Part shown: in pieces, positions 8,923 to 56,089 of the stretch
Position numbering within the stretch: the stretch's first letter is position 1
How the letters are laid out: each line of letters starts with the position of its first letter
Origin: Marsupella aquatica
Lineage: Eukaryota; Plantae; Marchantiophyta
Direction of reading: 5' to 3'
Assembly (NCBI GenBank): GCA_973895155.1
Contig: OZ316898.1
Coordinates: forward strand, 18,549,292-18,613,291
DNA: 64,000 nucleotides
Notes under the pieces: model-generated
Databases searched by the model: none
Seen by the model: the letters and a program-made list of their open reading frames with translations, nothing else
Told to the model about the DNA's origin: nothing
Made by a program: the position numbers and the translations under genes

Positions 8923-9161
8923 AGAATGGCAGAATTTCTCCCAGAAGAAATTCCATATCATGTGAGTGACAGAAGTGGTGGGACTGAACCAAGGATGCTC
9001 CGCTTTGACCAAGCTCAACCCAACAACAGTAACGGAGGGGGTCGGGACCAACGGAAGGGTGGCAAAGAGAAGAACACAAATGAACAGGGGAACAAGACAA
9101 CAACGGAAGAGAAGGGAACAGGCCCGAACAGAAGTACTGTCACACAAAAAAAAACTGCTTT

Positions 9162-14702: not shown

Positions 14703-16107
14703 TTTTGTATCTCTCTCCCTTAGTTTCTTGGGAGAGGGGGTGAAAATTGGTGGATGATAACTTTTAATGGGATGATGTTTTTAGTTGTGTTTTCTGAATG
14801 TTAGTGAAGAACAAATCCTTAGTTTCTCAGGTGGAGTACCACCCAACATCAAGCCAATATTGACTCTGACCTGACCTGTCAATTTCAATCCTTGCCTAGC
14901 CTGTTACTCCACTGTCGAAAATCTTCTTGGAAGAAAGAACTCACTGTGTAAGTATGAACTCAACTTTGTTAGCTACAGCAGGTGTCTGGAAATTAATGGA
15001 GCTCCTCAAGGAATGCCATGCTGATCATCGCACATGTTGTAGACGGGTGGAGTAAGTTGCTCTTCATGGGCCTTGCCATGCTCCGAATCTCTCTAGCACA
15101 ACCTGTCATCATTCTCGCTGGGTATATATATATAGGAGTGAAGCTTTGGGTACAAAACTGCGCAATTATCCGACTGCAAACTCTCAGTAGGATATTTCGA
15201 CGGATATTTCAGGGGGACTCATTGAGATATCTTTGAAATTTCATGGTCCTGTAGGAAGTCAACAGAAAATTGATCTGTCCTGGAGCTGTCTATACAAAAT
15301 CTCCGTCCCTGAAAATGGTGTGATAGAGGTCGTTGAGCATGATTATGTCTAAAGATAAAATTATAGCTGAAGGAGTGGGGCTGAACCCCGGGCTGAACTT
15401 ATAGACAGTGAGAGACTTAATTGTGGAAACCTGAACTTTCTGATTGGCTGGAAGTGAGAAAGAGAGGGAACGAGAGAATCGCCATTATGCTGGTCACAAC
15501 TCCTTGTGTCCTGGTTCTCCTATTTCTTGTAGTCATATTTACAAACTCTATCAGCGGAATGCTCGCTTCACTGCAATTGCCAAGAAATACCCCAACAAGG
15601 ATCTACTGGCCCCGCTACTGGCCTGAGTAAAGTCCCTAGCAAGCACAAATACTCTGTTAATGATCCTTCATCTCCAACACTAACATTCTCTCTAGGGCGA
15701 GATGGTAGTCCCATGTTAAGGTTCAGACGGTGCCGTTCTCTAGTTCACTCCCCATGTCACACTTATGACGAGTCCAGTTTTGTTCATGGTTTGGTGATTA
15801 GATGTGCGTACAATCTGGAATAGGGCAAAACCATCGGTTCAAAAGAATTCTCCGCTTCAAAAAAGTCTCTTGCCAACATTGACCAGCATCTCCGTGTTGA
15901 GCAAATCTTTCGTCCGGAATTCCAATGGCAACAGGTGGATTTCTCTAGGCGTTAGAAACACAGTGATGGACCAAACGAGAAGTGTGACCACACTCCTCAT
16001 TTTGCCAGCGGCGAAAAAAGTTTCTAAGGCAAAAAAGCCTTGGATACGGAATTAGTATTCCCACTAAAAACTAGTTTTTCAAATTGAAAAAATGGGAAAA
16101 ATCGACA

Positions 16108-16860
16108 CGAATACGAAGATGGGATACGGCGTATCCCATTTCGGATCCAACCGCGGAATTCCCAACAAAAAAAAAAATGCAGTAAAAGTGCCGATATTGG
16201 TTTACCCGACAAGAATATTCCAAAATGATTCTTCTCAACGGTAACATTTAACCGACTGCGATGCAACTACAGTCAAATACTAACCACGGTCAGTGAGAAA
16301 ACTATAAATAGGAGATCACCGCTTGAGAATTTTACGCTCATTTTTTCTCGCTCTGTATACTCTTACTCTCGATGAATGCACACCGTCTATACAAACTCGT
16401 ATTCCCCGAAAATCAGTTTTGACGAACAGGTGAGAATCTTCCTGAAAATGGCGAGGACGAATCCCAAATGGGATACGGCGTATCCCGTTTGGGATTCAAC
16501 CCTCAAATTTCAAGTTTTCATTTCACATTAGCTAAAAAAGGAGGTTGGATGCAAAGTGGGATACGGGGTATCCCATGTCGCATCCAACCTCCAAATATGA
16601 AGTATCGTAGACTCCAAATATCAAAACCTCAACGTTGAATGCGAAATGGGATACAACGTATCCCATTTGGGATTCACTCTTCAAATGTCCAGTTTGATTT
16701 CTCTTTAGCTAAAAAAGGAGGTTGGATGCAAAGTGGGATACGGGGTATCCCATGTCGCATCCAACCTGCGAAAATGAAGCATCTTAGACTCCAAATGTCA
16801 AAACCTCAACGTTGAATGCGAAATGGGATACGACGTATCCCGTTTGGGATTCACTCTTCA
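16108..16860. repeat. Array of 6 palindromes, GTTGRATGCRAARTGGGATAC-N3-GTATCCCAYYTCGCATYCAAC
   Basis: Copies at about 16108, 16459, 16544, 16634, 16720, 16811; the last five have an 85-90 bp period. Confidence 0.9.
16303..16435 (+). promoter_or_regulatory. TATA promoter, short 5' exon and splice donor inside the element A terminus
   Basis: TATAAATAGGAG at 16303 and CAG/GTGAG at 16427-16434; same TATAAATAGGAG at 18388; inverted counterpart at 55421-55552. Confidence 0.55.
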
Positions 16861-17562
16861 AATGTCCAGTTTTGATTGCCCATGTGGTATTTACCTAGAG
16901 TTTATTTGAATGATGGGAAAAACCTTATGGATTATTGATTGTTTCGCAGGCAAAGTTCAACTAAACTATATGCACTGAAGCTCTTGCTGCCTTTCAGTGA
17001 TCGACACCCACTCAAGCTTAAGCTTTCCTTGAAAAACAAAGTTTTCTCTTGTGAGTCTAATGGCGGTCCAGAATCAAAACCTTGAGAAACATGCTCGTCG
17101 ATTGTATAAGCGATTAGTTGCACTCAAAGTTCTTCGTCCTGGATTAGGCGCGCTATGGACGGGAGGCGTGGATCCACATGATAGTTTGAATCCACTCCGA
17201 ATAGAGTTTTGTGAAAAAAATGAGGACGGAGTTCTGATTCGGTCGAGGATATGTTTGAGTGGTTGTCTGCACTCTGTTAATTCTTCTTGTAACTATTGTT
17301 GTGATGCCCAAAACAAATATCATTGAATGGCATATTTTTGTTGTCGGATTTGGAACAAAGATCCTTGGGTTAACTTATCGCGTTAAATTTTCTTGATTAG
17401 TGTGTAAGTGTTTAGGTGAACGTTCTTGGGTCAAACATTTTGTGAATATATTTTTCTTTTGATCAAAGAAATAAAATCAGTTTTTCCATCACTGTTTTGT
17501 AGGTTGCTGAGAAAGAGCTCACCATCTCATTTATTACTCTAGGTATCCACTCTTATTTTGGA

Positions 17563-18250
17563 ATGGCAGTCACTGAGAACCCTGTCTTTACAAGGTTAGC
17601 GATGTCATTCGACAAAGAGAAGAAACAAATTCAACAAAAAGGTGGCCAAAGGGAATCCGGATTGCTTTTGGATGGACTTCCTGACGAGATTGTTGAAACG
17701 TTCATTTGGCCCATTTTGAAAGTTTGTTGTATAGAGGATGAGTTTGATTCCTCCAAGAACCAAGCTGATGAAAGATTGATGCGATTAAAAACCATGGTGT
17801 GGCTTGGATGCACCTCCAAGAAATGGAACCAGCTCGTAATTTGTACACGAGTCTGGGGTATTCTTAGACTAGCAAAAAGCCAGCTTGAGGAAGTAAATGA
17901 AATGCTGACAAGCATTCCTGATGGAAAACCCCTTCAGAATGTTCATATTGAAGCTTTTGTTAGGATGGAAACACCGAATCTTCCTCCAATCGATTTCTTA
18001 GGTTTATTTTCAAGGTCTGACCTAAATTGATTTCAAGAAGACTAGCACAATCTTGAGAAAGATGAGCAAGCGAGGCTCTTGGAAATGTATGGGGAAGCTT
18101 CTAGTCTGGTTTAGAGCCATCTTGAATAGGCTCTTTGTAAAGACTCTTTTTAAGAATATCAACTTAGTTTATTTTGTGGCACAATTCCGAATGAATAAAG
18201 AGTTTTATGATTACCCTTGCATCAACCCGATTCGCTACGCGTAAAATCTA
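17563..18250 (+). pseudogene. F-box-like cargo gene of element A
   Basis: LLDGLPDEIVETFIWPIL...LGCTSKKWNQLV resembles an F-box with an insertion; in-frame stops follow 18030. Confidence 0.5.
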
Positions 18251-18563
18251 TTTGGTTGAATACAAGGACTTGGGGATATGCCTTATCTCTAGTCCCATCA
18301 AGAGAAAAAAGTATACATAGACATCTGGACTCCAACACATTATCGCCTGTGGAAACCTTATCGCCTGTGGATACGAAGGTGATAAAGTATAAATAGGAGT
18401 GCCTGGTCAGAAAAATTACTCTCATTTCTTTTTCTTCTCAACTTTGTTTGCCTCCGCGTTTTTCTCGGGCCGCAACATCTCTATAGCTTTTCGTATTTGC
18501 TCAAATCGAAACCAAAAAATAGGTAAAAACTGAAGAAACTCTCCCCTCCTCGTTTGGTTAATT

Positions 18564-19040
18564 GTTGAATCCTGAGAGGGATACACCGTATCCCCCTTTG
18601 TATTCAACTCTATTATTTGGCCTTCTTTTCAATGTTGAATACAAGATGGGATACCGCGTATCCCATCTCGCATTGAACACCCTCTTTTTAGTCTTCCATC
18701 CGAACCTCCTCGCTCTTTCTTGACTTTGAATACGAACTAGGATACCTCGTACCCCAATTCGCATTCAACTCCCTCCTTTTTGTGCTTTGCATCAGACTCG
18801 AGGCAATTGTTGAGGTTGGATGCGAAGTGGGATACCGCGTATCCCATTTCGCATTCAAGTCCCTCTTTTTGGTTAATTGCATCAGACTCTGGACATTTGT
18901 TGTTGTTGGATGCGAAGTGGGATACCGCGTATCCCATTTCGCATTCAACTCCCTCTTTTTCGTTCTTTGCATCAGACTTGGCAATTGTTGATGTTGGATG
19001 CGAAGTGGGATACCGCGTATCCCATCTCGCATTCAACTAC
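18564..19040. repeat. Array of 6 GGGATAC-N3-GTATCCC palindromes in a putative 5'-UTR intron (18523-19076)
   Basis: Copies at about 18564, 18634, 18727, 18815, 18905, 18993; flanked by AG/GTAAAA donor and TTTTTCAG acceptor just before ATG 19081. Confidence 0.88.
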
Positions 19041-19080
19041 CTTTGGTCTGGTTCTAAGTGTGTCAATCTTTTTCAGGATC

Positions 19081-21900
19081 ATGTCAAACAAATCAAAGTC
19101 GTCTGGTTCGACCCAGTCTTCACGGACATCCATCGTCGATGAGATTTGGAAGAAAGACCTTTTCACGGAGGAGAAACTCGTGAGGAATAGGTGGTACTTT
19201 AGGGATGCTCGGGCGATGGATATTCACAGAGCCTATGAAGGTCCAGCGGTGTGGTTGGTTATAGTTAAGGGTAAAGACCATTGCCATTATGGATTAGTCG
19301 TGGACACCGGGGAGGCGGATATCACCGACTCAAAAACAAAACAGCTGAAGAAGATTCCAATGTACCTTTGCATTCTTCCGAACAATGCCTTCACTGTTGT
19401 TGTCCTCAACTACGAGAAACTTGATCGGGTCTCGATGAACACATTTCCTGATGACCCGATCTGCCAGCTAATTTCGGAAGTGCCGGATATTGAGGACTTT
19501 TCTTATTGGTGTTTGAAATTTGTCTTGAAGTCTTGGAAGGTTGTTGAGGATTTTACAAAGGTAGCGTATAGGTCCGTTGTTGGAGCCGACTTTGGCGTCA
19601 AAGAGCGGCCTTTGAAGTTGAAAGTGACGAAGCCTACCGATCCGGCTTTGAAGTCAGGGGAGATGTCTGGAACACCTCGACAAAGAAGAAATCTGCCACA
19701 GTTTCTTTTAAGGAACCGGCAAAGAGAAAGCTTGTAGATCAACTCTCCGGGGAAGGTTCTAAAGTAGCGGTGTCAGGAGAAGCTATTGTCAAGAAGAAAT
19801 TGGATCGACGTGACATCCAGAAGCGCGCGCCTTCTGCACCAGGAAGTGTTGTCTCATCTTTGGTCCTACCAATTTCACAGACACCTTCTCAGATTCCTTC
19901 AACTTCGTCAGGTGGGCCTTCTTTATCATCTAGGGGAGCTGTTAAAGAAAAGAAAAATGATTCAACAGATATCACCACAGCTTTGCAGCGGGAAGAGACA
20001 CTTGTGGTTTGTGAAGAAGTGTCTCGGTTGATGGAGACTAAGCGAGTTCAGAAGACAACAATTATTCTGAAAACAACTAACCTGCTTCTTGTTGACGATA
20101 TTGACGACGAGAACTCAACGTTGGTTCGAACAGTCGATCGGTTGCATGTGGAGAACATCAAGACTTTGATGAAAATGAATCCGACAAATTTCACGATGCC
20201 ATTTGTCTTGTTTGTGATCCCCGAAGACTGCCCGACAATGACAGACTAGGACCCAGAAAAGGCAACAAGCTGGAGATATCGAGTGATTGGAGGTAATCAC
20301 GGTGCTCGGGCTAAGAGAGAATTGTATCAGGCTTATGGGAGAGAGATCTTCAATGAACTCCAAGCTTGGGTGTATGCTGGTCTCACAAGGGAGGACATTC
20401 ATAAACTTAGCATCCAACATAATATTGATCAGGAGTACAGGAAAAAAATGAACAACATTGATCAAATCCGAACAATGCATAAGATTTTCATTGCTAGAGG
20501 AATGGCAAAAACCAAGGAGACTAGAGAAGCATGTGCGATGGAGGTTTGCCTCGACGGGTTTTTTCCGGGGGACGCCACAAGCCTGAAGAAGCATGAGCCT
20601 CTCTTCCAAATTGCGTTTAGGCCGGGTAAGGTCTGGGAACTCCAAGACCAGATCTTTGAGATGTGGAACAAGTTGGAGATCAAAGGGCAGAATAAGCAGA
20701 AGTCACCGATCAAGAAACTCAAGAAAGGAAAGGGAAAAGCGCAGTCAATTCCAAAAGCTTTGAATAAGCTTGTAGGGGGCCTTACCTTGACACCTTGGAG
20801 AGCAATCCAAGGAATTGAACACGACCAATTTTTAGAGTCCCTTCTTCTCCGAGTGAAGGACCGGATGATCTCTTTGGAGCAAATGGCAAAAGAAGCCGAG
20901 AGTTACAAGAAACTTGTGAAAATCAGCAAGATTTTTGTTCAGTTGTCAGGGCAGCCAGACTGGGCGACTTGCAAACGAATGTTTCTGAAAGAAACAGAAT
21001 CTGCCAAGCTTGAAAGATGGAGTGGGAAATTGTCCGATGTGGTATGTTCTCCCCTTCCACTGATTGGACTTTAATATTTGTTTCGCCATGTTCGGAGGTT
21101 TTCTTCGTGGATTTCTTGTTGGAATGCGAAGTGGGATACGGGGTATCCCATCTCGGATTCACTTGTGCTTATTTGATGTTGGTGATGTTTCAATGTGGTT
21201 TTTTCTTGGTTGAATGCGAAGTGGGATACGCGGTATCCCATCTCGTATCACTTGTGGTTATTTGACGTTTGTGATTTTCAATGTGGTTTTTGCTTGGTTG
21301 AATTCGAAGTGGGATACGCGGTATCCCATCTCGTATTCAATGTGGTTATTTGACGTTTGTGATGTTTCAATGTGGTTTTTTCTTGGTCAAATGCGAAGTG
21401 GGATACGGGGTATCCCATCTCAGATTCACTTGTGGTTATTTGATGGTGGTGATGTTTGACTGTGGTTTTTGCTTGGTTGAATACGAACTAGGATACGGAG
21501 TATCCCATGTCACATTCGTCATCCAGATTTGATTGTTTGAATTCCTAAATGGTTATCTCCCCATTGTCTTTCCTCCAAACAAGTTTGCGTTTGCAGTTGA
21601 AAGCTTTTTCGAAGAAGAAAGACAAGGATGTAATTGGTGCCGATGCGGTTAAAGCCTACGGAGGAGCTGACTTCGAGTGTTATTCCCCTGGGGTTTAAGA
21701 ATTACGTTCAAGAAGCGATTGAGAACTACAACCGTTGTCGTGGGATTGAAACGGTTGAAGCAGAGTCGAGTGACCATCGATGGAAAAATGCTGACATAAA
21801 TTTTATCAGATATACATTGCATTGTGGAGATGTCAGGGCGCTGGATAAGTTTGTAGAGAAAAGGAATTACACACTTGCAATTGCAGACATTCCTTATGGA
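19081..21900 (+). pseudogene. ParB/Srx-like domain fused to N-terminal part of a beta-class N6A/N4C DNA methyltransferase (element A)
   Basis: LVRTVDRLHVENIK..YRVIGGNHGARA..AWVYAGLT (ParB-like); after intron 21042-21596, YTLHCGDV..YTLAIADIPYG (motif IV, DPPY-like); frameshifts and a TAG at 20247; cut off immediately after DIPYG by element C. Confidence 0.7.
21118..21520. repeat. Array of 5 GGGATAC-N3-GTATCCC palindromes inside the intron of the ParB-MTase gene
   Basis: Copies at about 21118, 21208, 21297, 21386, 21476 (89-90 bp period) between donor GTATGT 21042 and acceptor TTGCAG 21596. Confidence 0.9.
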
Positions 21901-22715
21901 TCACCCTATTCATTAAAACTGGAATTTCTCTAGTCCAGAAGTTGACCTTCAAATTTCTTATTTTACCCCCAAATGTTCTATAACTTGTTCCCCAAAAGCA
22001 TATATTTTAGTGGCCAAATATACACTTTTTGAGGTCTAAAATTACAATTCTAATGCCCAAATTATTAATTAAATAATTCAGTTATCAATTATTAATACTT
22101 ATTAATTAAAAGACAATAAAGTGTTCTTATTATATACAATATAAACAATGAAAAAATAGAATAAGATAATATAATAAATTCAAATGACCCGTGATAACCA
22201 AGTTACACAAACAAGGAAGGTAAACCAGTGATGTATTATAAAAGTAAAAAACCTATTTTTACAGGGTCGAGACCACGTCTGCCCCAATGCAGGCTCTAGA
22301 TGGTTTTGACCGGTTGTTGAATGTATATCAATTACTATGTAAAAATCTATGTCGAGATTATCTCGACCCACATGTAGGGTCCACATAATTTTGGCCCGTT
22401 GTTGAATCTATATCTCTAGCTATTCCCTTTGTATAGGGTCGAGACCCAAATAACCTTTTTCTGAGAACATATCTACAAGTAAAAGAGGATCAACAGCATC
22501 TAGACTCAAATGGATAGTACGCATAGCTTCACTTATTTTTTAGTAAGAATATGTATATCTACAACTCACATTGTAACTGTTCAGTGTAGGGTCGAGATAA
22601 TCTAGACCCAAATCTCATGCTCCTCCACCCCGCAGAATTCATTTGAGCAAGTAAATCTAGACCCTGACGGGTCATATTTCATATCGCGATTGCAGAAATC
22701 GAGAGGCTTCCTATT

Positions 22716-23678
22716 CTAGAACTTCGTGGTGAGGTCCCTACACCTCAAGACTTCCGAAACAAATCCCCGATGATTGTCTCTGTAGGGTCTTGTGTACTGA
22801 TATCCAATTAACGTCTTTGCAAGGTCGTTGATCGTCTCCTCCGTCAATTCCTCCATTGGTGGTAATTGTTGCACTTCATTCTTGACATCCCAAGGAATTT
22901 CGTCCGCTATGACATCCAAGACTATATGGATAACCAAATGAACCCATACCATACTACCCCACCGCTCCGTCAACAACGCATAAATGGCAGCCTGTTGATC
23001 TCTGTCCGCTAAAATATTTATCATAGACCACTTTGGATGATTGATAAAAAGGTAGTGCTGAAGATTGAAGGCATGATACAATTTCCTGAGCATAGGCCAT
23101 AGTATTTCTGGAAAGAATGTATCATCCGTGGAGTGATGCGAAAATGAGGAAGGAAACAACCCACAATTCTCTGGATTCGCAAATGCCTTCATTGGAGTGT
23201 CATCAAGAAGGAGTGTATTAGTTTCGTCGTATAATCCACCATAACGTTTCCAAACCACCCTCAAATCCTTCAAATGAATATTTGCCTTCCCATCGGTAAT
23301 GTCAGGCCTCTGAATTCCAGTATCGAATGTATCTTCTTGTGTGAGAATAAACTTGAATTGCTCTCGCTCTTCTTGACTGAAGATCAAATGAATCATTTCA
23401 TCCGTCCCGGGTTTCCTTGCACAAGTCCAAATGGCAACATCAAATAACAAAAAAGCTGCGATTAAGAACTCGTGAAGATGGGGTCACTCACCATACATAA
23501 AGTTAAACCCTCCACGTCTCCCCCAGTGGACACCCTTGACACTTGTTGCACTATGGCGCGGTCCGGAACTTGGCGTTTTGGCAGAATCCCAACACATTTT
23601 GTTGAGGTCAAGAATCAATAGCTTCCGTCTGATCGGACCGTGAAGTGGAGGCAAGGGTCTGCAAAGAAGGAACACCAA
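22716..23678 (-). pseudogene. FCP1/NIF-family (HAD) CTD-phosphatase-like cargo gene
   Basis: RKLLILDLN..; E*PHLHEFL (in-frame TGA replacing R of RPHL); FDVAIWT; KDLRVVW..NTLLLDDTPMKAFANPEN. Confidence 0.8.
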
Positions 23679-23980
23679 TGTTAGAATTGTGGGAGATAAA
23701 ACAAAGGAATGCTCGAGACGATCTCGAGCATCACAAGTGAATGAACAACAGTCAACGTCATACCTATTGTTGGTTGAAGGTCAGTAGTTGAAGAAATCTC
23801 AGGACATCTTTGGAGATTATTGTTGACACACTCCACAACTGGTAAGGGCCCGCCTATTTCTGTGAAGGTAGACATAAAAATTTAGACGGCTGAATTTCAG
23901 GACTGTTCAAACTAACTTGGGTTTCAACCTCACGTGCTGAAAGACCCAAATTCATCTAGAAGGTTATCTCCTAGTTGGTT

Positions 23981-26900
23981 TTAGATGTCCAAATTTATCC
24001 CTCCGGGAAGGGTCTCAACAAGAGCTGGCTCAGACCAAACTGGCACTAATTTGAACTTATCCTTCATATACTTTCTAGATCGAATAATCTTCTCAGACTG
24101 CTCTATACTGACTTGTTGACCTTTTGACGGTCCATCAGTCCAAACATAATGAGTAGCACTTGCTTTGAGTGATTTGTAACTAGTTCTACCAATTTCAGTC
24201 CCCGGTTTCCTAACAAAAGGGAGAATTACGGGGCTTCTAGTAGAAGAATCTGTGAAAACAAGCTTATTCTCTGAAGCGCAAAATATTTGGTCCAAGGGAG
24301 AGGACGATGCACCTGCCTCGTCCTGAGGGGGAGTATGGCAGCCACTAGCTTTCTTAGTAGAGAAAATCTCATCCAATTGAGGAGGGCTTGGAATTGGTTG
24401 GCTAATTGCATCCTGCAAGGTGGATTCCCAGCCAACATCCAAGGTTGAAGACTGTTGTTCACATTGTGCATCCCCAAGGTCACCCGATGAAGGAACACCT
24501 GGAACGTCGAGATCATCTCGAGCATCATTTCCAAATTCAGGCAGTATTTCACCCTCCTCTTTCATGTAGCTTGTGATTTTCGGGCCCTCCGTTTTGCGAT
24601 GCTCTAAATTCTCCGCAAATACTTCCTCATAAACACTGGCTTCCACCGGAGCTATGTCTAAGGCCGCCTCTTCTATTACAACAAGGGGACCGGCAGTAAT
24701 TTCCTCAGATGGTAACGGCTCCTTGGGTGGCACATATAAAACCTGTTTGTTGTCATGAAGGAGCTGAGCAAAGGCTTCTGTGAATTCCATCTCTTGAGCT
24801 GTGTCCAAATACACAAAACAATCACGACCAAGAATGACACAAGCTTTCAATGTCTGTCCTCCAGAGAAGAAATCCAACACTGTATGACCTGGGCACGAGA
24901 AATAATCAACAAGATGCTTTGTCATTCGCAAAGGCTTTGCTCTCGGATTTACAAAGCCACCACGCCGACCGACCATCTCATAAGATGGGGCCATCTTCTC
25001 CAAAACTTTGACATCAATAGTGGATTCATCGAGCTTGTCTTTCCCCTTTGATTGGTCTTTGTTGTTCCCAGTAGGGGCCTTCAAAGGCAAGACTGTGAAG
25101 TCTCTGTCCCACTTCTCACTGTAGTTCCAGAACGCATAAAAGTCATCAAAGAAAATTTGGGACCAGTCTGGTTCCTCTTCACAACAAATTCCCCCAAAGA
25201 TGATTGAGTCTCGGGCTCCAATGAGAAAATCTCCCTCCTCCTTGGGCAGCTGATCACGGTAGTAGCTCTCATACTCCAGCTTTGTGTGGACTTTCTTCTC
25301 ACGACAAATCTTTTCAAAGGCACTCTGAATCTGGCCTATCAATGGGCCTTGACGGACAAAAAAGATTACTAAGAGCTCTGTCGAGTTCACCATCTGCAAA
25401 CAATACTCCAGCAAGACAAAAATTTTGGCATCTGTCCACTGCCGTTGTCGAAGATGACCAAAATCGACAATGGAGAGTGGGCACGTCCTTTGCACCGAGT
25501 CAACAATCTCAGGTTTCATTGTCCTCATCAAATTATCGCTAAAAAATGTGCGATAAGGAGTATCCTCCATTGAAGGCAACCCGCCAAATACCTTGCAATA
25601 TATCTGCTCAAGCCTAACAATGAGACTTTGCGGAAATGGGTCTTTTGGCCTATTTCTTTTTAGGAGGTTGGAAATCCAAACCTCTTCAGCAAGTTGTCTA
25701 AGTTTCGGCAACTCACCACGATCCATAAATGCAAGCAAAAATTGAGTTAGCTCAAACCAAGTGAGTGAATTGGCAAACCAATTCGGATACTTCAAAACGA
25801 AGTACTCCACAATTTTTGCCCTCAGCTTGGTCATGACTTTGAAAGTATGAGCCGTATCACTCATTGATTGAACATCAGATTTGTTGGCTGGGTCTTTCTT
25901 CAATAAAACCTTCTGTTGTTGAACGGTAGTAAAAACTTTTAGAATGTCGTCACTACTCAGGTCTCCTTCAAAGCATCTAAACAATGCCGGCGTAATAATT
26001 TTTGTTATCCGGGATTTCCCATTTATTTTTGAACCTAACTCCCCTAGACCATCCGGAAGAAGACACTTGACCCAATCGATGCACATTTGTCTCCAAGTTT
26101 GGAAGAGGTTCTCATCCAAAAACAGCAACCAAAAAATATTCCTCAGATCGGATTTTCCAGTCGTTATTTTGGCAAGGGCCATAAAATCCTGATCCAAATA
26201 GTACAAAGAAAATCTGAGGCTCGAGACGATCTCGAGGTAGAATTAAGGAACTATGGTAAAATTTATGGGAGAATACATGAAGATAAATCAAATACAGAAA
26301 CTTGACCTCGAGGCTCGAGACAATCTTGAGCTAGAAGTGGATTTGAGTTTGAATTTACCTGGAACTTTTGATGATCATACTCCATGGTCTTATTAACAAC
26401 ATTTGCCCTTTGTGAGTGTTGAGCAAGTATTGTTCTTGGAGTTCTGTCCGAAAGAATTCGTGACTTTCGATATTGCAGACTCTTCGCGACCTCCTTCAAC
26501 TTTGCATGGCTCTTAGCCCAACCTATGATCCAAACATTTGCCTTTGCCGAGTGTTGTCCACTGATTGCAAGGAACTGCACCTTCTTATTCTTAACACCCC
26601 ACTCAAACTCCTTTTGATCCTCAGTAGTATTCTCATAATGGAGCAACTACAAACTCTCTCTTGAATACGGAATTAAATCAGCCACAGCTGGTACCATTCC
26701 AGGGTTTCTAACCATGGATTTTGCGACCTCCATGGCATGGTCTTTATTGAACATCCTATATACCAAAACTGCAGACAGCGAATCTATACTAGTGACAGGA
26801 ATGTCAAAAGTTTCATTCATGCCAAATGTGTAATACTCCTCAATCTCCTTAAGAACTTCGGCTCCTTCCTTAACGCTATTTTCTCCCGGAGCATCTCCTG

Positions 26901-27858
26901 GAGTGCCATCATCATCGGTATGTGCATTCACACCCGAGGAAGATGCCGGAATGATATCTACCTTGGGCGGCGCGGACTTTTTTTGAGGTGGAGCCTTCTT
27001 CGCTTTGCTTTTGGGTTTCTCAACCCTCTTCCTCTTTTGAGACACCTTTGCTTCCTTTTTGTCCAAACCTGACGTCTTGTCTCCCGCAGCTATAGATTTC
27101 AATTTACCTATTTGTCTCCGATGAGACAACACCCACTTTTTACAAGCATCCTCGTCAAATTCTTCGGCTCCAAACACAAAATCAGGGGATATGGATTCAA
27201 ACTCCCCCAATTTGGATTCCGACATTAGTCTCAAACCCTTCCACGTGAAAGGAGTCGTGAATGCATCATCACGATCAAACCCATACTTTCGACAATAAAG
27301 GAATCCAAAAATTATGTCCGCTCCAGATATAGGAGTATCTTCTAGCAAATTACTTGTAGTAAAACCCTCGGGGAAGAATCCTATTGATATCACGCTCAGT
27401 TGTTTCCTGGCTGCACGTTCGATGTTAAGATTGCAAGAGTAGTTTTTGGCGTGAAGTCTAATTAGAGCCCACTTCCCTGTCTCATGATTCTCCACCGTCA
27501 AAACCATGTCCTTACCGTTACTCGTTACAATAGAAACAATAGGCCCTAGAAGGCTGCACACTAGAGGATCAACTGATGGAGACCTCGTCTTCACACAAAT
27601 AATAGTTCCTTCCATGTCTTCAGTTTCAGCAAGCTCAATGGCCCAACAGAATCCAAATAAACCCTGTCCAGGGCAGGAAACCTCGATTGCATGTTCATCT
27701 TTGACTACCAAATTAGGCGATCCCAATTTCGCACCTGGTACAGCCAAAATATAGCAATTGTCAGAAACATGTACTACAAAACCAAGAAACAAATAGGTGG
27801 CTCGAGATGATCTCGATCTTCCTTTTAAGTTTAATAGTCTGACATGTTCCAATACCAT
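23981..27858 (-). pseudogene. ParB/Srx-like domain fused to beta-class N6A/N4C DNA methyltransferase domain (element C)
   Basis: FDIPVTSI..LVYRMFNKDHAMEVAKSM..FLAISGQHSAKA (ParB-like); VNPRAKPLRMTKHLVDYFSCPGHTVLDFFSGGQTLKACVILGRDC matches the HPTxKP..LDPFxGSGTT..GR end of beta MTases; in-frame stop at 26647; likely intron at about 26215-26359. Confidence 0.72.
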
Positions 27859-30251
27859 TTCATCCTTGGAATTTAAAAAGAGATTTCAAACCCAAGAAAT
27901 CTAAAAAGATAACACAATAGTTAGGAAACACAATAGGGTCGAGATGATCTCGAGCCACCATCTGTTTAAAAGATCTCGATCCTCATATATATCAGTTGAG
28001 GTTTTATTCCATTGCATATCATGAACCAGTCAAATTTAACAAACAACATTTTCATGAATGATCCAATGTCACCTATTCGACCACATTCAAAACTTCTAAC
28101 TCAGTGGTTTGTCATCTTCACAAATGAGTTGGAGGACTAAGAAAGTGGTCCAAAAGGCAAGCTTGGATCACAATGAAAAGGATATTAGTAATTGACGACA
28201 TGGAGTCCTTCCAACTGGAAGAAATTGGCCAAGGGATACGAATGACCATAAAGGAAGATGGTGAGGGATATATTTGGCTCGAGATGATCTCGAGCCTAAC
28301 ATGTCAAACGAGTGATCCGAATATCATATTCAACAATGAACATCATATTCAATCAATGATTAAAATCCACTTTCTCCATTGACTTCTGATACCCACAAAC
28401 CCGTTCAGATGTCAATAATCAGAACGAGTTGGAGGGTACAGAAGTCCCTGGAGGAAGGAAATTTTAGATTTTTTGGATATGATGTTTCACTTTTGAAGGA
28501 TAAGGGTTTCCAACTTGAAGAAATCTCACTAGGTCACATGCAGGAATTGCATATTGGCTCGAGACGATCTCGAGCCTCATGCCACTTACATCAAATGCAA
28601 AATCAATTGATAGATCACAACTTTTGAAGCAAAGTATTGTAGAAAACATCAATAGGCTTGAGATGATCTTGAGCCTCAACTGCATCCAAGGAATCCAGAA
28701 ACAAGTGGACCAATTGAAGCTCGAGACGATCTTGAGTTAAACCTAAACAGAACAGAGATGATGAATTACGTTTAATGGTGCGATGGATCTGATGCGCTGA
28801 GTCTAGATGGGTCTGAAGCTCTTCGCCAACGGTTGCAAGGTTGTACTCAACGAAGTCCTCCTTGGAGAAATCTACAACAATTCACATGGCTGGTGAAGAG
28901 AGGAACGTACTACGGGCTGAGAACGTAAAAACAAATCTCGAGCCTAAACAGAATATCTTGACCCTATCGAAGCTCGAGCTTAAACACAAAATCTTGACCC
29001 TATAAAATCTCGAGGAAAAAACCTAATCTCGACCCTCTACAATCTCGAGGCTAATACAAGGATCTCGAGGCAAGAGCGCAAAACAATCTAGAGGCAAGGA
29101 GGCAAGGGATGCGAGGAGGCGAAGAGGCGAGGAGGCGAATGTGAAAATGGGGAATTCAAAACCCCTGAAGCCACTATAAGCCCCTCGGGGGTCGGCCTTG
29201 GCCGTGCCAAGCGTGCCAGGGCTCGTCCAGGTTCAGGCAGGCTGCCACGCAACCTGCTGGGTGCGTACAGTCATTATTACGATCACACGTGTTGTCATTA
29301 TTGTTATCCGTACTTCAGCCCTGCCGTGAGTTTAGCCGTGACACAAGTTCAACAAAGCTGTCTTATTGGCCTTTTTGTCTGTCAGGGTTTTATATATTGC
29401 TTCTCTTTGGTCTGTAGCGGGTCATTCTTCTCATTTCGTTTCATTGCTCGCTCGTTTCTCCCTCTGCCTCTCTCTCCCTCTCCCTCTCTTTGGCTCTAGA
29501 TTTCTGCTCTGATCTCTTTCTGTTGTTCTTTTCAAGGGTTGTGGACTCTACGTTTGTGTTTAGGATATTTCGAGAAATTCTCATTTTAAGCCCTGAAGGA
29601 GGTCTAAAATAATTGAGCTCCTATCTTTTAGAAAACCAAACCTTTTCAGCTTATACTAGTGTTGGTCAAAATCCATTTGGAAGCCTTTTCCCTCTATTTG
29701 ATGGCCTTTTAGAAGCTATTTCTTAGTGTCTGGAAGTAAACTGGGAGCCTACTTTCTTAATTGCACCAAATCATTCCTCTAGATCATCTAGAGCCATTTA
29801 TATGTTCTTATTTTGGGTGGCTTATTATTCATAATAATTTCTTTGTCAAATACAATGTCCTTTTTGGCTTGAGATCATCTCGAGTCATAAGTTTGATCCT
29901 CAAACTTATTCACTTTTGCCTTCTTTCTAATGGTGCATTTGGTTTTCCTTCTTATAATTGAGTTTGTAGAGAGTCGGAGGTATAGAATCTGAATTCGCTA
30001 TTCAGTGAGATTTCATATTTTACCTCGAGATCGTCTCGAGCTAAATACTTCTTAATTTTTACATATTGGAGTTTTTTGTCCCTCTTCTACCTCGAGATCG
30101 TCTCGAGGTAGAAGAGTTTCTTATTTTCTCTATCACACAATTTTGTGGGATAAACTTCAACACTTGGGTTTTTTGGTTTGTTTTTGTAGTCACTTTACCT
30201 CGAGATCATGTTGAGGTAACTACATCCAACAGTTTGGACCACGTTTTCAAA

Positions 30252-32939
30252 ATGAGGATTTTCTTTCGAGGGGACAAGGTTTGCCTCGTAATCGACGGAG
30301 TGGAAGTTTCTTGCGGGACCGTCCTCAAGGTTGACCCGGGTGACTCAGTGCGTAATGTTGATTTGGGAAGTAATCGTATAGGAGTTCTCATTGAGAAGTG
30401 CTATGAGGGATCATGGGAAATTCCTTACCCTTTGCTGCCGACCAGGACCCTATTTGATGCTGTCGACTCCTGCATTATTTGGGATGCTTCTTTTGCATAT
30501 TTGAAGTCATAGTCAACTCCAGCGACAACACAAATGGATGCCTCTTGTTCTACAAAGGATACGGTTCCCGGTTTTGTACCAGACAAATCTTCGGTGGGAA
30601 GTTTTGGAGACTCGATTATATCTGGCGATGAAGTTGAGCTTTGGATCGGCAATCAGATTGTGGCTCGTGGATTTGTGTTCAAGACGAATCCCAATGAGAC
30701 CTGTCAGACACAATGAAAGACTTGGCACTTCTAGGATTAGTGTGAAAATATGTGAAGTTTTTCAAGGGAGAGGTTACCCTTTCCTCACAATGGAGCCGAT
30801 ACCGTTCAGGAAGCATTGGACACTTTTGTATTCTGGAATTTAAAGGATGTTACTCGGAGGAGTTCTTCCCAGGATATGCTAAACGACCTGTCCACACGGG
30901 ATGTTTTTTCAAATTATAATTTCAAGGATTATAGTTTGCGTTCTAATTGGATGACCGAGGAGGTGGAATTGTATGCTGAGGATAATCGGACCAAAGTGGG
31001 GGTTGGCATCATCACAGTTCCTTTCGAGTCAGGTGCAATTGATGATGATGTTCTTGGACCAGATCACATTGGGGTTGCTGTCACACGCGTGATTGACCCT
31101 CTATTTTTCCCAAATATCTCCCCAGGAGTGCCTGGTCTTGTTAGGTGGGCCGTCCGTTCACTTCTACTGATATCAAGGGGTATTTTTCTTCTGGATCTCA
31201 TTGAAGAGGTTTCTCCAAAACCAATTATTGATGGTCGAGATCATCTAGAGGTAGATATGAAAGGTGACACTGAGTTTTTGAAGCGCCCGTATAATTTCAT
31301 CAAGAGAACGAAGGTCAACCCAGATGGAAAAAGGAAGAAGCACTTGGAGTCTCGGGCAATACTGAAAATCACAAAGGAGGAAATCTGGAGACCTCCTTGA
31401 AGGATTATATTGGGCTGCAATGAGACCAATTTTTCAATCTCTTTTGGACTTTGAAGCATTTCTTGCAGGTTACTTAGAACCCAAAAAAGTCTCAATTGCT
31501 AGATTTCAAGGAGCTGAAGATGACCAAGACTACTTTGGTGTTGATCCCAAGGCTACGTCTACCTCTTTCAAACCATTGCCAAGGCACCTGATTTGCAAAT
31601 GGATAATTCAGGGAAAGATAACAAAAACCAGTACATGATGACATTTTGCAGTGAGCTTGTTAGTAGAGGGGTTTTTGAACCAGTGCAGATGTCGTTTCTC
31701 ATGGTTGGTCACACCCATGAGGATGTTGATGCATTGTTTTCAAAAGTATCCAACCAAGTGAAGTACAAGGAGGTTTCTACCCTCTTGGGGTTGATGGCTG
31801 AGGTTTGGGAGTGTGAAAGCATTCATCCTGTCCCGTGATGGTTGATCCAAGAGGTTGCAGCTTACAAAGAGTTTTTGAAAACTTTCAAGGTAAAAGACAT
31901 AGAGGGTCACTCAAAACCAGTGGCATTTTTTTTCTCTATGAGAGATAATGTTCCAATATATCAATACAAAGCACATGTGAAACAACCTTGGTACCCTCCA
32001 ACCGGAAGGTCCATTTGGAGAACTGATTCCAGCACCAATGCTCTCATTTTACCAGAAGGTCAACCATTTGCAAAACCCATCTCTGGGGATGTACGAGGCA
32101 AGGTTGAAGAAATCATCCCATTCCTTAATCGTTACATTGAGTTTTTGAAGAAGAGTTGTAAGGATGAGACCTCTACAGCATATCGTGAGCGGTTTCCTTT
32201 GGTGAAATATTGGGAGATGGTGGTGCAAGTATTATCTGGGGAGATTACAATTGAAGGGGAGGCAGAAATACAGTTAGCATTGACATATGAATTCTGGCCA
32301 AAAACCAACCACGGAACTGGTTACAAGGTTAATAGTACAAGAACTTCTGAACCATTGGGGGAGCCTAGTAGTAGTACACAGAATCCACAAATGGTGGAGC
32401 TTCAGAATGAGTACCTGGAAGAGATGGAGGATCAAGCTGCAACATTTGTTGGCGCTCGACACGAGCGAGAACTTGCACGTTGGATTCCTCTGCAGGACAT
32501 TCAAGAGGGTCACTTTGTATTTCTCCGTCCAGAGGATGAATGGGAAAAGAAGAATGGGAAAGAACGTTTCTGGTTGGTGAGAGCTTTGGGTGTTGTGGAC
32601 CCAAACCATGAAGTTCCTTCAGGAGACTTGCAATGCAATGAGAATTCTCCTACTAGTACACGGTATGCTCCTATGTTCCAAGTGCAATGGTGGAGGCCTA
32701 AACATGGTAAGCATGATGCACCGGATCATGTGCGCTATTCACATTGCTTTCAGACCACTAAGACTTGGGAGGTGGATCCTGGGTTTGACAGTGCCACTGA
32801 ATGTTGGCAATTTGCTAATTCTGCTATGTATGGATTCAAGTCACGCTCTAGAGAAGAAAATATAATTGATAGAGGTTTGACCATTCCCAAGAATGTTTTG
32901 AAAATACTCAAAACCTACATGGAAGGGATTGTTGAGTAA
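30252..32939 (+). pseudogene. Transposase gene of element C: three Tnp1/EnSpm-like repeats plus Sola-like (DUF7869-type) DDD core
   Basis: Three V.xG.V..DP...LG...I.V..W repeats (30252-31170); QMDNSGKDNKN..FLMVGHTHEDVDALFS (31593-31838); stops, frameshifts and a probable internal deletion near 31390. Confidence 0.7.
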
Positions 32940-33829
32940 GTCAAATGTTTTTTAGTAGTCACTCTGTCAGAGTGAGGGAGTCTATGTCATTTAGTTTGGA
33001 ATTAGACATGTCAGAGTGAGGGAGTCTATGTCAATTAGTTTGGAATCAGACATGTCTTTAGTACTTACTGTTGGTTAGTACTAAGTAGTATATATATCTA
33101 TTTAAGTAACTAATTTTATTATAATATTTTGGGATACTAGTTTGATTAGGTGGAGGTAATTGGACTTGGATACCTTTATAATTGCTTTAATTAATTATTA
33201 TATCAATACAGACTATATATTACATGAAGTCTTAATATCCATGATAGGATGTGAGTGCCTCTTAGTACTGTCTAGTAGTAAACCTTAGTTTCAACTCGAG
33301 TTGCTTAGAATGTAACAAATTACTTGTCTGAATGGATAGTAAGCCAGGTATCATTCAAATTTAATATATTAAATGCTCTCAATTAGTAACTAAGTAGAAG
33401 GTTAATTTAGCTAGCTAAGGGTAGAGATCATATTGAAGCTTTACTAGTTATATGGGTAGAGATCATATTATTTGAAGCTTTACTAGTTATATGGGTAGAG
33501 ATCATATTGAAGCTTTACTAGACACTTATATTCTATTAGTCAAATTGAATCAATGTAAGTAAGTTCTACTTCTTATCCAACATATTTTACATTATTATCA
33601 CCCAAATGTTTTTCTTTAGAATCCAAATTAATATTTCATTTTCTCCTATGTACAATCTTGATCCCCCAAATGTACAACATCTGGTGCCCAAATGTACAAC
33701 TCTCACTGCCCAAATGTACAATTCTTGTGCCCAAATATATATTTGTTGGTGCCTAAATGTCCAAAGATCAAAGAATTTTTCAGTTTTAATGAATAGACTG
33801 ATACTTACCCTAGATTTTCTGTAGGGCGG

Positions 33830-52959: not shown

Positions 52960-55900
52960 ATTCCATGCCTTTTAGTAATGCCTAAAACAATGAGGGAAAA
53001 ATCTGAAATGCCTAAAACAATGATTTCCAGTCCTCTCTCTGAAAGCTTAATCAAGACGTCTCAAAACACACAAACAAACAAAAAAACGCCGATCGCCAAT
53101 CACGTAGTGCACAACAAAATGGGATACCGCGTATCTCACTTTGCATTCATTCAAAGAAAATCAATCAAAAACATGCTAAGTCAACCGTTTGGCAGACACA
53201 TTTACCAGAAAGGGTAAACCAAATTTAAATATCTACTAAGCGTAAAAGCACCTTCCACAAAATATTTCCTCCAAACCACAGTTGATCCTCATAGTCAGTT
53301 AAGTTAACCCAAGCGCATATTGGGTCCGGAACACAATTTGAATACAAAGTTAGATCCAAGTATCCAAGCTGGTATTCAACCTCAAAATACTCAATCGCCA
53401 CACCGCACGCCTAGAAATTGAGGTTTGAATACCAATAGGAATCCACGGATCCCATTTTTCTAAACAGGACCAAAAACAACCCTCTCAAAACCACATGTCA
53501 ATACCAAATGGGATCCATGGATCAACTTTAAAAATGATGTGTTAACTACTACAAACAACTTGATATTGGGCTTTGAATACCATATGAGATCCACGGATCC
53601 CATGTGGTCGTCACCCCCCAAATTAGCACTTCCTATATCCATTCCCATAATATTTTGGGTCAAATACCAACATGGGTCATGTTTTTTAAATACGTACGGA
53701 CAACTCAAAGGACTCCATGTGGACACATTTCCAAAACTATACAAGCACGAGCTCACACATAAAAGTTTTTCTTCACTTTTGTGAACTCATTCAAGGGACT
53801 CGATGAGTGAGGTATAACAGAAATTGAGGATGAATACCAAATGGGATCCACCTGTCAAAATTTGCCCTTGCCACACCTTACATCTTGATATTGAGGTTTG
53901 AATACCAACACGGATCTATTGATCCCATTTGGTATTCACCCGCCAAAATTTGCCCTTGCCACACCTCACACCTCAATATTGAGGTTTGAATACCAACACG
54001 GATCCATGAGTCTCATTTGCCAATCCAACTCCAAAATAATTTTAATATTTTTCCTTGCTCATCACAACTCCAATCACATCCATTTTTTACTCTTTCAAAA
54101 TATGTTGGACCAATCAATGGACCTACCCAAAAATGGAGGCAAATTTATGCCAAGTGGGTTTGTGGATCCCACCTCAAATTCAAAGTCCCAGATTAGCCCT
54201 CGGCCATAAGCCACTCATCCATTTTCACATTTGAATACAAATTTGGATCCCATTTGGTCTTTGTAAAGTTCTTGATTTGTAAAATAACATGCTCTTATAC
54301 CAAATATGGGATCCATGGATCCCACTTAGTATTCAAACAAGTTTTTATGACTATTTCCTTTCTAGATTTATGAAATAACATGTTTGAATTCAAAATGGAA
54401 TACCAAGTATCCTACTTGGTATTCCTCTTAAAGTTTTCACTCATTTGTTTATTTTTTGAGAAATGCAATAGGATTTTTTGCAAGATTTTTTCTTTTTCTA
54501 CTTTTGTAGCGCTGAGTGAAGCGGCTAAAGCATCTCAAGCTCTTTTTTCTAACGATATCAATTATAAGGAATATGGATAAATACCCACAAAGATATGACT
54601 TCCAAAGCGTGAGAGGACCGAGTACAAACCTAATTTTCTCTAATTTTGTAATTTCACCCCACAACTTCATTTTGTCATATCTTAGTCAATCTTTCATCAT
54701 TTTGTACTCTTTATAAACCAATTTAATGTGCTATGATGAAATCTTTTCATTTCACTATTTGAATTTGATTGAGTTACACATAGAAACATATCAATTCTTG
54801 TCACAACTAGTGATGAAGATGTTACGTATAAATTTGGATCATTTCAAGACTCTCAGTAAGCTAGATAGGGTCTTTGGATTGATTTTGAAAAAATGATTAA
54901 AAGCTTAGGGGCTCAAAGTTAAAAATGACCCGATATCTCACTAGTTTGGGATTTAATTTCTCAATTTATGACTTATGCGTTCCAAAAGCCTTGTATCCTT
55001 GGATTAAATCCGAAGTGGGATATGTGGTATCCCATTTTGTATTCAACTCGTGCACTTATGGCTTGTGCAATTTCATTTTTCATTTGGTCCGTCAGTGTGT
55101 TTATTGTGAGATTGTCGATGGGATATGTGGTATCCCACTTCACATTCAACCTATGCCTTTCAAACCTAATGTGAGAGATATTCTTTTTTAATCGTAAAAT
55201 GCGTGTGATTCACCGGTTGAATCTGAAGTGGGATACGCAGTATCTCATTTTGCATTCAACCTTGAATATCCTGCATTTCGCACCTAAATGCTTCATATTC
55301 AACCTCATTTTCTCATGTTTATGACACCCAAACTGGATTTTTGAAGATTGAATCCCAAATTGGATACGGCGTATCCCATTTGGGATTCGTCCTCATCATT
55401 TCCAAAAAGATATATCATTCTCACCTGTTCTTCTAGTCTGATTTGAGGGGATACGAATTTGCATAGAGAGTGTGGATTGTTAGGGAGCAAAAGGATACGG
55501 GAGCGAGAAGAAATGAGCGGAAATATTTGACTCGGGGCTCTCCTATTTATAGTTTCCCCACAACCATGGTCAGCTTCTGACCGCAATTTCATCGCAGTCG
55601 GTTGAAAGTTACCGTTAAAAAGAATTTTCTAAGAATATTCTTGACGGGTAAACTGACCTTGCCCCTTTTACTGCGTTTGCTTCTTCTTCTTTTTTTGGAA
55701 AACCGCGGTGGGATCTAAAATGGGATATGCCGTATCCTTGCTTTGCATTCAAGTCATTTTTTATCATTTTTTAAAATCTCAAATCTGGGTTTTTAGAGGG
55801 AATACCAACTCCGTATCCAATAAAATCTCAAATCTGGGTTTTTAGAGGGAATACCAACTCCGTATCCAATAAAATCTCAAATCTGGGTTTTTAGAGGGAA

Positions 55901-56048
55901 TACCAACTCCATATCCAATAAAATCTCAAATCTGGGTTTTTAGAGGGAATACCAACTCAGTATCCAATACGTTTTTGCCTTAGAAATTTTTCCCGCCGCG
56001 AGAAAAATGAGAAGTGTGGTCACACTTCTTGTTTGGTCCGTCACTATG
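52960..56048 (-). mobile_element. Terminal fragment of an element-A-family transposon, inverted relative to 15959
   Basis: Ends ..GTGTGGTCACACTTCTTGTTTGGTCCGTCACTATG (reverse complement CATAGTGACGGACCAAAC..); GGGATAC-N3-GTATCCC palindromes at about 53115 and 55003-55751; GGGATCC-N3-GGATCCC variants at 53337-54424. Confidence 0.8.
55772..55967. repeat. 49-bp tandem repeat x4 inside the transposon terminus
   Basis: TAAAATCTCAAATCTGGGTTTTTAGAGGGAATACCAACTCCGTATCCAA at 55772, 55821, 55870, 55919; a single equivalent occurs at the 15959 end. Confidence 0.95.
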
Positions 56049-56089
56049 TTCCTAGTCATGGTACGTGGTCATGTGGGTCATTGGGAGAT

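Follow-up and report, generated by a model that had tools for sequence, protein, structure and literature searches.

ParB-like/methylase-fold genes and lineage-specific palindromes in liverwort DNA transposons

The PAG3 protein of Plavaka transposons in the red alga Bostrychia combines a ParB-like domain with a 2-oxoglutarate (2OG) oxygenase and has tandem inverted-repeat arrays adjoining its gene; it is proposed to bind and modify its own element (Petroll et al. 2025, bioRxiv 10.1101/2025.02.11.637652). The Sola1-1_Ec32 element of Ectocarpus encodes an accessory protein of 1104 amino acids (aa) with a ParB-like domain and an N4C/N6A DNA methylase, for which the authors suggest self-binding and self-modification (Dinatale et al. 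2025, PMC12477816). Fusions of ParB-helix-turn-helix (HTH) with Dam were noted earlier in chlorophytes and chytrids (PMC4738411). The locus described here lies in a 64,000-nucleotide stretch of the liverwort Marsupella aquatica (assembly GCA_973895155.1, contig OZ316898.1, positions 18,549,292 to 18,613,291; hereafter the window, in whose numbering coordinates are given) and consists of decayed copies of two liverwort DNA-transposon branches, element A (15953-21903) and element C (21904-33796). The evidence supports that a gene in each of the two elements encodes a ParB/Srx-superfamily module with a beta-class amino-methylase fold after it, and that the palindromes which surround these genes are lineage-specific in sequence and kept in position around the gene across species.

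The likeness to Plavaka PAG3 lies in the fusion of a ParB-like domain to a nucleic-acid-modifying fold within a giant DNA transposon and in the inverted-repeat arrays beside the gene. SET and methylase genes travel with the ParB gene in the Plavaka accessory set, and the related locus of Riccia sorocarpa (L002) also has a SET gene. The liverwort elements differ in their effector, which is a beta-class amino-methylase fold (with an added NIF module) and not a 2OG oxygenase, in their land-plant host and their DUF7869-type and CACTA carriers, and in having sites that fill several introns and gaps and whose conservation between species has been measured. Sola1-1_Ec32 is, by its description, alike in the domain pair and in having the gene on the strand opposite the transposase, as in element C, and both elements are large (21.5 kb against 11.9 kb); unlike here, palindrome arrays are not described in the consulted part of that article. 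An earlier note on this DNA had presented the pairing as a candidate new system. The idea of ParB-like proteins that bind and modify their own eukaryotic transposons is already in print for algae, and a literature search returned no published report of ParB-like transposon accessory proteins in liverworts.

More distant parallels exist in prokaryotes and in Arabidopsis. Like bacterial and phage ParB-methylase fusions and ParB, Noc and KorB, the liverwort proteins show a ParB N-domain fold, with a possible HTH-like domain in the same order, and are fused to an N6_N4 methylase, and the sites are palindromic and clustered as are parS, NBS and OB; unlike bacterial ParB, they have no Pfam ParBc match, their GERRxR motif is replaced and the gene is eukaryotic with introns. 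The likeness to VANDAL/VANC of Arabidopsis is one of concept, namely that a transposon accessory protein recognises family-specific non-coding motifs in its own copies, but VANC motifs are short direct repeats and not palindromes, and the carrier is a Mutator element. The methylase fold shares with M.RsrI-type beta-class N6-adenine methylases the permuted order in which motif IV precedes motif I; unlike those enzymes and MpDN4MT1 of Marchantia, which have DPPY or TSPPY at motif IV, it has DIPY or DVPY in the A lineage and lacks the motif in the C lineage.

Palindromes and genes of the two elements and their relatives

Element C is the more complete of the two and is organised as follows.

21904..33796: element C, an 11.9-kb DUF7869-type DNA transposon with 19-bp terminal inverted repeats (TIRs) at 21906-21924 and 33778-33796, CTATTCATTAAAACTG
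22716..23450, minus strand: NIF/FCP1-like phosphatase open reading frame (ORF), Pfam NIF E 2.4e-8
23981..26206, minus strand: methylase-like ORF of 741 aa, motif I VLDFFSGG at ~24857-24880, D-F-G-H at the motif IV position (25454-25465)
26263..27858, minus strand: N-terminal and ParB-like part, in frame with the methylase ORF, stops at 26647-26649 and 26263-26265
27801..30199: main palindrome cluster, 11 of 17 sites, filling the 2.4 kb that separates the accessory gene from the divergent transposase gene
30066..32939, plus strand: transposase in several ORF pieces, DUF7869 domain at 31593-31838 (Pfam E 2.1e-29)
22351; 23712 (methylase-NIF gap); 24506 (coding); 26220 and 26314 (ParB/methylase junction); 31234 (transposase region): other palindromes

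The accessory gene is a single minus-strand reading frame from 27858 to 23981 that is interrupted by two in-frame stops and followed by the NIF ORF; it contains the peptides SGQHSAKA at 26539-26562(-) and NPRAKP plus VLDFFSGG at ~24857-24950(-). The transposase is divergent from it and fragmented. The palindrome of element C, CTCGAGA-N3-TCTCGAG, has 12 matches with at most one mismatch at 23712-30107 and 17 with at most two at 22351-31234, where none is expected (0 in shuffles). No match was found in the window outside element C, be it in the long interspersed nuclear element (LINE), the Gypsy element or the host genes. The sites are dispersed and not tandem, and those with at most one mismatch are internal, leaving 1.8 kb between the left TIR and the nearest such site and 3.7 kb on the side of the right TIR; the sites at 22351 and 31234 are weaker, with two mismatches each. 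Most imperfect sites differ by CG>TG or CG>CA, which is the signature of CpG decay.

Element A lies directly to the left and is preserved only in part.

15953..21903, plus strand: element A, the truncated left part of an A-lineage DNA transposon, its start set by inverted homology with 56054-55330
16121..16877: palindrome array 1, six sites on a 177/90-bp repeat, downstream of a TATA box (16303-16314) and a GT donor (~16420)
18578..19042: palindrome array 2, six sites in a putative 5'-UTR (untranslated region) intron between the TATA box at 18388-18399 and the ATG at 19082
19082..21901, plus strand: A-lineage ParB-like/methylase pseudogene, with the N-terminal ORF to 19737, the ParB-like part at 19770-20249 and 20283-21074, and a methylase exon at 21634-21901
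21115..21508: palindrome array 3, five sites in the intron that separates the ParB-like exon from the methylase exon
53121..56054, minus strand: second, inverted A-like terminal fragment with the same terminus, a TATA box at 55540-55551 and degenerate A-type palindromes

The palindrome GGGATAC-N3-GTATCCC has 16 matches with at most one mismatch at 16121-21506 and 17 with at most two, against an expectation of 0.00 (0 in shuffles), so that the earlier count of about 17 copies of its own 17-bp palindrome for each element is borne out. Most of the sites form three ~90-bp tandem arrays (16459-16877, 18632-19042 and 21115-21508), and the remainder are single. Like the palindrome of element C, it is absent from the LINE, the Gypsy element and the host genes of the window, as had been claimed. 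The full palindrome extends over ~45 bp, GTTGAATGCGAAGT-GGGATAC-NNN-GTATCCC-AT.TCGCATTCAAC, and its outer arms GTTGAAT..ATTCAAC are also kept; the 7-bp core is much more conserved than the outer stem. Downstream of each of two TATAAATAGGAG boxes (16303 and 18388) come a short piece of non-coding DNA, a GT donor and an array of palindromes, and the second of these modules closes at an AG right before the ATG at 19082. The predicted gene model places the donor of this second intron at ~18522 and its acceptor at ~19076, and a further intron at 21075-21633. A bacterial promoter and terminator scan was set aside as irrelevant for a eukaryote, and its 'terminators' were the palindromes again. Behind the first module lies the first gene of the element, a 155-aa ORF at 17563-18030(+) which has no Pfam match and contains a candidate F-box-like stretch, LPDEIVETFIWPIL. 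At the position of array 3 the relatives L004 and L011 each hold palindromes of their own, and in P0094 (L006) the ParB-like and methylase exons are joined directly without the array 3 stretch.

The ParB-like ORF of element A (19770-21074) is interrupted by an in-frame TAG at 20247-20249, just before VIGGNHGARA (GGNHGARA at 20289-20312(+)), and its methylase exon stops right after I-A-D-I-P-Y-G, with DIPY at 21886-21897(+). Homologues that are ~50% identical to the region are uninterrupted, with Trp at the position of the stop. Other genomic copies, seen as contigs, have G at 20248 (Trp) and continue beyond 21901 as ..YGFNAPGSENDE, which matches the relative L004. The copy in the window has therefore acquired a private nonsense mutation and a truncation at the start of element C, and its right-hand limit follows from the TIR of element C and from the loose ends of other genomic copies at 21901. 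Profile, tblastn and DNA-pattern searches did not find the missing 3' half of the methylase in the window. The exons and stop-separated pieces of the window were each searched singly. The peptides quoted in the earlier note are all present, and both accessory genes are pseudogenes. Contig depth summed over copies across 18000-23800 reaches hundreds or thousands in four runs from two organisms, which indicates that the A and C families are high-copy in both genomes.

All homologues found are from liverworts or metagenomes, among them a locus of Calypogeia fissa (L003) that has the same element type and gene set as element C, including a NIF ORF downstream. Its transposase (L003:1752-3350) is 63% identical to that of element C, its N-terminal/ParB-like ORF 32% and its ParB core 47-53%, and at the DNA level the coding stretches alone align (71-74%). 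This locus contains 26 CTCGAGA-N3-TCTCGAG sites with at most two mismatches, where 0.07 are expected; they lie in a 35-bp array upstream of the gene, in the ParB/methylase gap (three), in coding sequence (one) and in a 74-bp array in the methylase/NIF gap. The palindromes of the two species are thus found at matching positions relative to the genes despite flanks that cannot be aligned. A second C-lineage locus, L010, has CACGCGC-N3-GCGCGTG, again of 7-3-7 geometry, which precedes the gene and recurs in the ParB/methylase gap. In Riccia sorocarpa (L002) a ParB-methylase-NIF gene stands among Transposase_21 (CACTA) and SET genes, and the palindrome is TACGATT-N6-AATCGTA (20 matches against 1.7 expected), with clusters upstream of each gene, including one at 9197-9289 directly upstream of the ParB-methylase-NIF gene. 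The SET-domain gene at 4422-6339(-) of L002 adjoins the ParB-methylase-NIF gene and has palindromes upstream too (6779-6880). The identity of the ParB core to that of element C is 47-53% in L003, where the site is the same, and ~40% in L010 and 32-42% in L002, where the sites are different.

In the A lineage, L004 and L005 carry GCGA[T/G]AC-N2-GTCTCGC on both the upstream and the downstream side of the gene as well as in the ParB/methylase gap, and L011 carries 17 core copies of CGATAC-CG-GTATCG, which occupy every non-coding gap of its 9.4 kb. The half-site G[GC]GATAC is common to the A-lineage palindromes, of which the flanks and spacing vary. The palindromes are therefore element-specific, as proposed earlier, to the extent that the sequence differs per lineage, but the A-lineage sites are not fully private. 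Both L011 and L012 have a convergent DUF7869 transposase downstream of the accessory gene. Because this is the transposase type of element C, A and C are deep branches of one type, which qualifies the earlier description of two dissimilar elements. The accessory gene lies inside a DNA transposon and beside its transposase in element C, L003, L011 and L012.

Folds of the accessory protein

The ParB-like module was recognised through structure. The region of the C-family homologue P0006, the counterpart of 26263-27858 in element C, found only 76 relatives among 1.84 billion representatives and is predicted to fold as a ParB N-domain. The C-family model (AlphaFold2, L001:687-1370, alignment of 42 relatives) has a predicted local distance difference test (pLDDT) score of 91.6, and its best Foldseek matches are all Noc, ParB, PadC, Srx or KorB, with a best E of 4.9e-3. 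VIA-align superimposes it on residues 37-132 of Myxococcus ParB with Z 10.1 and a root-mean-square deviation of 2.3 Å over 95 residues, and the top 29 matches all belong to the ParB/Srx superfamily (ParB/Noc/PadC/KorB/Srx/SbnI). For the A family, residues 126-282 of the model are collinear with the HTH region (~131-233) of ParB/Noc/Spo0J/KorB at Z 5.7-6.7, a weak match on a helical domain; the eight best matches are all ParB family, and the A-family match to a ParB-type HTH is suggestive only. The ESM Atlas gave scores of at most 0.89 for the A ParB ORF and was uninformative. The profile and structure searches that the earlier note had proposed as a check thus return ParB/Srx matches by Foldseek and an N6_N4_Mtase fold, with the ParBc profile failing, and the ParB claim holds by structure and not by a ParBc sequence match.

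The GERRxR arginine patch, which in ParB serves CTP binding and clamp closure, is absent from both families. Its position is taken by I-S-G-Q-H-S-A-x-A in the C family, where G113, Q114, H115 and S116 are nearly invariant, and by G-G-N-H-G-A-R-A in the A family. SGQHSAKA and GGNHGARA resemble the DGQHR (DndB) and GGCHR (Srx) variants. Because of this replacement clamp-and-slide spreading is doubtful, and the earlier analogy to CTP-clamp loading at parS loses its footing.

The methylase fold is genuine. The C ORF matches Pfam N6_N4_Mtase with E 1.3e-5 and 25.7 bits, against a gathering score of 26.7, over the motif-I end only (VNPRAKP...VLDFFSGG), and the same holds for eight of the nine scanned relatives in which the region is present; P0006 has no Pfam match. 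The C-family methylase profile matches M.RsrI, over motif I, at 5.7e-8, and the permuted order is visible, with D248 preceding D445-G450. A canonical motif IV, (D/N/S)PP(Y/F/W), is absent in all nine aligned C-lineage sequences, which have D-F-G-H in the window and D-F-[GS]-R, DLAR or DLTH in eight relatives. The A lineage has D-I-P-Y or D-V-P-Y, a near-canonical variant that is borderline. Its member L004 passes the Pfam gathering score with 33.8 bits, is 53% identical to the window A exon and shows the permuted order (VADVPYG at residues ~85-91, CCGTGS at ~250); some 30 A-lineage methylase relatives, 50-81% identical, all have the Pfam domain, and to judge from these sequences the A-lineage methylase may still be active, while the copy in the window is without the motif I half. 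The methylase ends of A and C are weakly alignable (27.5% identity, E 3.6e-4).

A NIF fold is recognised by Pfam in L003 (E 4.9e-14) as in the window, and Riccia P0010 carries the phosphatase-like and methylase-like parts in a single fused protein. The catalytic DxDxT is absent: an upstream exon at ~23530-23600(-) has LLILDLNKMCWDS in its place, which reads D-L-N-K in the window and in L003 (~13700), and the counterparts are D-C-N-G in L010 (~4950) and D-V-E-G in P0010. Since the canonical catalytic motifs are missing from both, the methylase and phosphatase folds of the C lineage are probably binding or scaffold modules.

A reader for the palindromes

It is proposed, with slightly better than even confidence, that the palindromes serve self-recognition as cis sites, bound by a dimeric protein which the element itself encodes and which is most likely its ParB-like accessory protein. 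The site is kept without its flanks, its positions are fixed while its sequence is lineage-specific, and its two-fold symmetry comes without wobble bias, all of which argues for double-stranded DNA sites that are read by a symmetric element-encoded dimer. The ParB-like protein is the best candidate for this reader because it has a ParB N-domain and a possible ParB-type HTH, because the sites are densest at its own gene and because the design recurs with another transposase type. The accessory fusion comprises an N-terminal domain of unassigned fold, the ParB/Srx-like module and the beta-class amino-methylase fold, to which the C branch adds a NIF/FCP1-like module, and each lineage has a palindrome of fixed geometry scattered through its non-coding DNA, in promoter-proximal 5' introns, in the ParB-methylase gap, behind the gene and near the transposase promoter. 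A dimer of the ParB-like protein would bind the palindromes of its own element and so recognise its own copies, whose transcription or chromatin it would adjust in this way, either through anti-silencing or through autoregulation. Two degenerate enzyme folds, together with the conservation of the sites and their fixed positions, point to the role of a reader or scaffold rather than simple self-methylation, and for the C lineage such a role (for instance autoregulation, anti-silencing or recruitment to Pol II or chromatin) would be favoured; self-methylation would be conceivable for the A lineage alone.

If this is true, the elements would be a second independent case, after VANDAL/VANC, of sequence-specific self-recognition encoded by a transposon, here built from bacterial or phage parts and spanning red and brown algae to land plants. 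Beyond what the consulted parts of the algal reports contain, the liverwort loci offer a site that is kept from one species to another amid diverged flanks, several variants of the site, each particular to a lineage, at fixed positions relative to the gene, and methylase and CTD (C-terminal domain)-phosphatase-like folds without canonical catalytic motifs. The data also supply concrete pairs of cognate protein and site.

A number of findings weigh against this proposal. The related loci are a small set confounded by phylogeny, and both copies in the window are dead. Pfam ParBc matched none of the window ORFs, P0006, P0010 or the 42 members of the C-family alignment, and sequence searches of the Protein Data Bank (PDB) with P0010 and two family profiles gave no significant ParB match. 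The A-family N-domain model is of low confidence (pLDDT 59 overall), and the Z of 6.7 for its HTH falls in the range of common helical arrangements. BLASTP between the A and C ParB pieces found nothing, and hhalign of the A pieces against the C-family profile gave E 0.07-0.18, in a plausible register but not significant. In element C, L003 and L011 the conservation of the DUF7869 transposase equals or exceeds that of the ParB core, and sites also lie at transposase promoters and introns in L011 and Riccia L002. Because the transposase travels with the sites in the DUF7869 lineages, co-variation cannot separate it from the ParB-like protein; the earlier claim that protein and site co-diverge holds in so far as the ParB-core identity tracks the site in the C lineage, with the transposase co-varying.

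The last of these points lead to the strongest competitor, in which the palindromes are sites of the transposase or another element protein (TnpA-like) that controls transposition or promoters, and the ParB-methylase gene is unrelated cargo. CACTA elements carry subterminal TnpA-binding repeats, L003:3762-5267 has a weak TNP1/EN/SPM match (E 0.003), and the sites of element C, L003 and L011 are accompanied by the DUF7869 transposase, which shows 63% identity between the loci that have an identical site. This competitor is nonetheless judged unlikely: in element C no strong site is closer than 1.8 kb to a TIR and the strong sites are grouped around the accessory gene, the same layout occurs in Riccia with a different transposase type, Transposase_21, and the symmetry of a palindrome implies that of a dimer, in keeping with ParB-type HTH proteins.

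The earlier note had suggested that the fusion is an active enzyme which writes N6-methyladenine (6mA) or N4-methylcytosine (4mC) at or near its cognate palindromes and thereby marks or shields its own element. For the C lineage this is unlikely because motif IV is replaced by D-F-G-[RH] or, in other relatives, DLAR or DLTH, with a Pfam match at the motif-I end only; the A copy of the window is truncated, and DIPY/DVPY is itself non-canonical. What speaks for such marking is the A lineage, whose well-conserved methylase family keeps D-[IV]-P-Y and motif I and includes homologues above the N6_N4_Mtase threshold, and the precedent that liverworts use a prokaryote-type N4C methylase (bioRxiv 10.1101/2021.02.12.428880). 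Taken together, enzymatic marking is considered improbable, more so than a transposase reader. An equally speculative extension would see in the ParB-like reader, effector fold and lineage palindrome a portable self-recognition module common to several liverwort transposon superfamilies, with the A-lineage methylase writing 6mA/4mC at its own sites to evade or redirect host silencing and the host N4C methylase perhaps descended from such cargo.

The palindromes might also act as nucleic-acid structures without a dedicated reader, either as intron RNA hairpins that feed small RNAs or as DNA cruciforms that affect replication or recombination. Many sites lie in predicted introns and the full A site can form a ~20-bp stem, but mismatches show no G.U-compatible excess on the sense strand (for A, 23 G.T against 27 A.C, without strand bias; 15 against 11 for C and 20 against 26 for L003), the 7-bp core is far better kept than the outer stem, and some sites fall outside transcribed regions, in intergenic DNA, and they are found in either orientation with respect to the genes, which makes this very unlikely. 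Least credible of all, with hardly any weight given to it, is that the arrays are neutral tandem satellites expanded by chance inside the elements, since, although the A and L003 sites ride on 35-, 74- and 90-bp tandem units, the 17-bp core persists from species to species with different repeat periods and flanks, the C sites are dispersed, and positions recur across lineages with different sequences.

The second A-type terminus and neighbouring DNA

The A-like fragment at the far side of the window (53121..56054), which the earlier list did not include, shows inverted homology to the left end of element A (15953-16517 against 56054-55330, 76-85% identical) and contains five to seven degenerate A-type sites at 53121-55722. 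A single 40-kb element from 15953 to 56054 is disfavoured, as no target-site duplication was seen and a host-type MPAB_Lcp_cat gene lies between the ends; on these grounds the two A-type ends are read as two insertions. Both termini carry a near-terminal palindrome, GAGAAGTGTGACCACACT(C/T)C, at 15975-15996 and 56011-56032, which is unlike the sites farther inside and may serve in recognition of the terminus. A variant site, TGGGATCCATGGATCCCA, is found at 54307-54324 with a gap of 2 and both arms symmetrically altered relative to GGGATAC, and a partial copy at 53512. The corresponding GGGATCC-N3-GGATCCC has no match with at most one mismatch in the window, TGGGATCCATGGATCCCA with its gap of 2 being the only such site found.

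The transposon region is flanked by retroelements, as the earlier note had recognised and as reverse transcriptase (RT) and other Pfam domains confirm. The LINE-like element at 6874-13172(+) has DUF4283/zf-CCHC, RVT_1 and zf-RVT, the Gypsy-type element at 47495-52296(-) has RT, RNase H and integrase, and both are without either palindrome. To the right of element C, at 33857-35821(+), are ORFs of 98 and 554 aa that have no Pfam match and by Atlas features alone resemble C-terminal regions of P-element/THAP9-type transposases (score 0.84, named clusters); they are probably another transposon fragment and are not a continuation of element A. An MPAB_Lcp_cat oxygenase domain occurs in three ORFs on the plus strand (4802-5320, 40808-41692 and 61184-62086; E 7.5e-14 to 1.3e-19), which from their sequences look like members of a dispersed host gene family between which the transposons have inserted.

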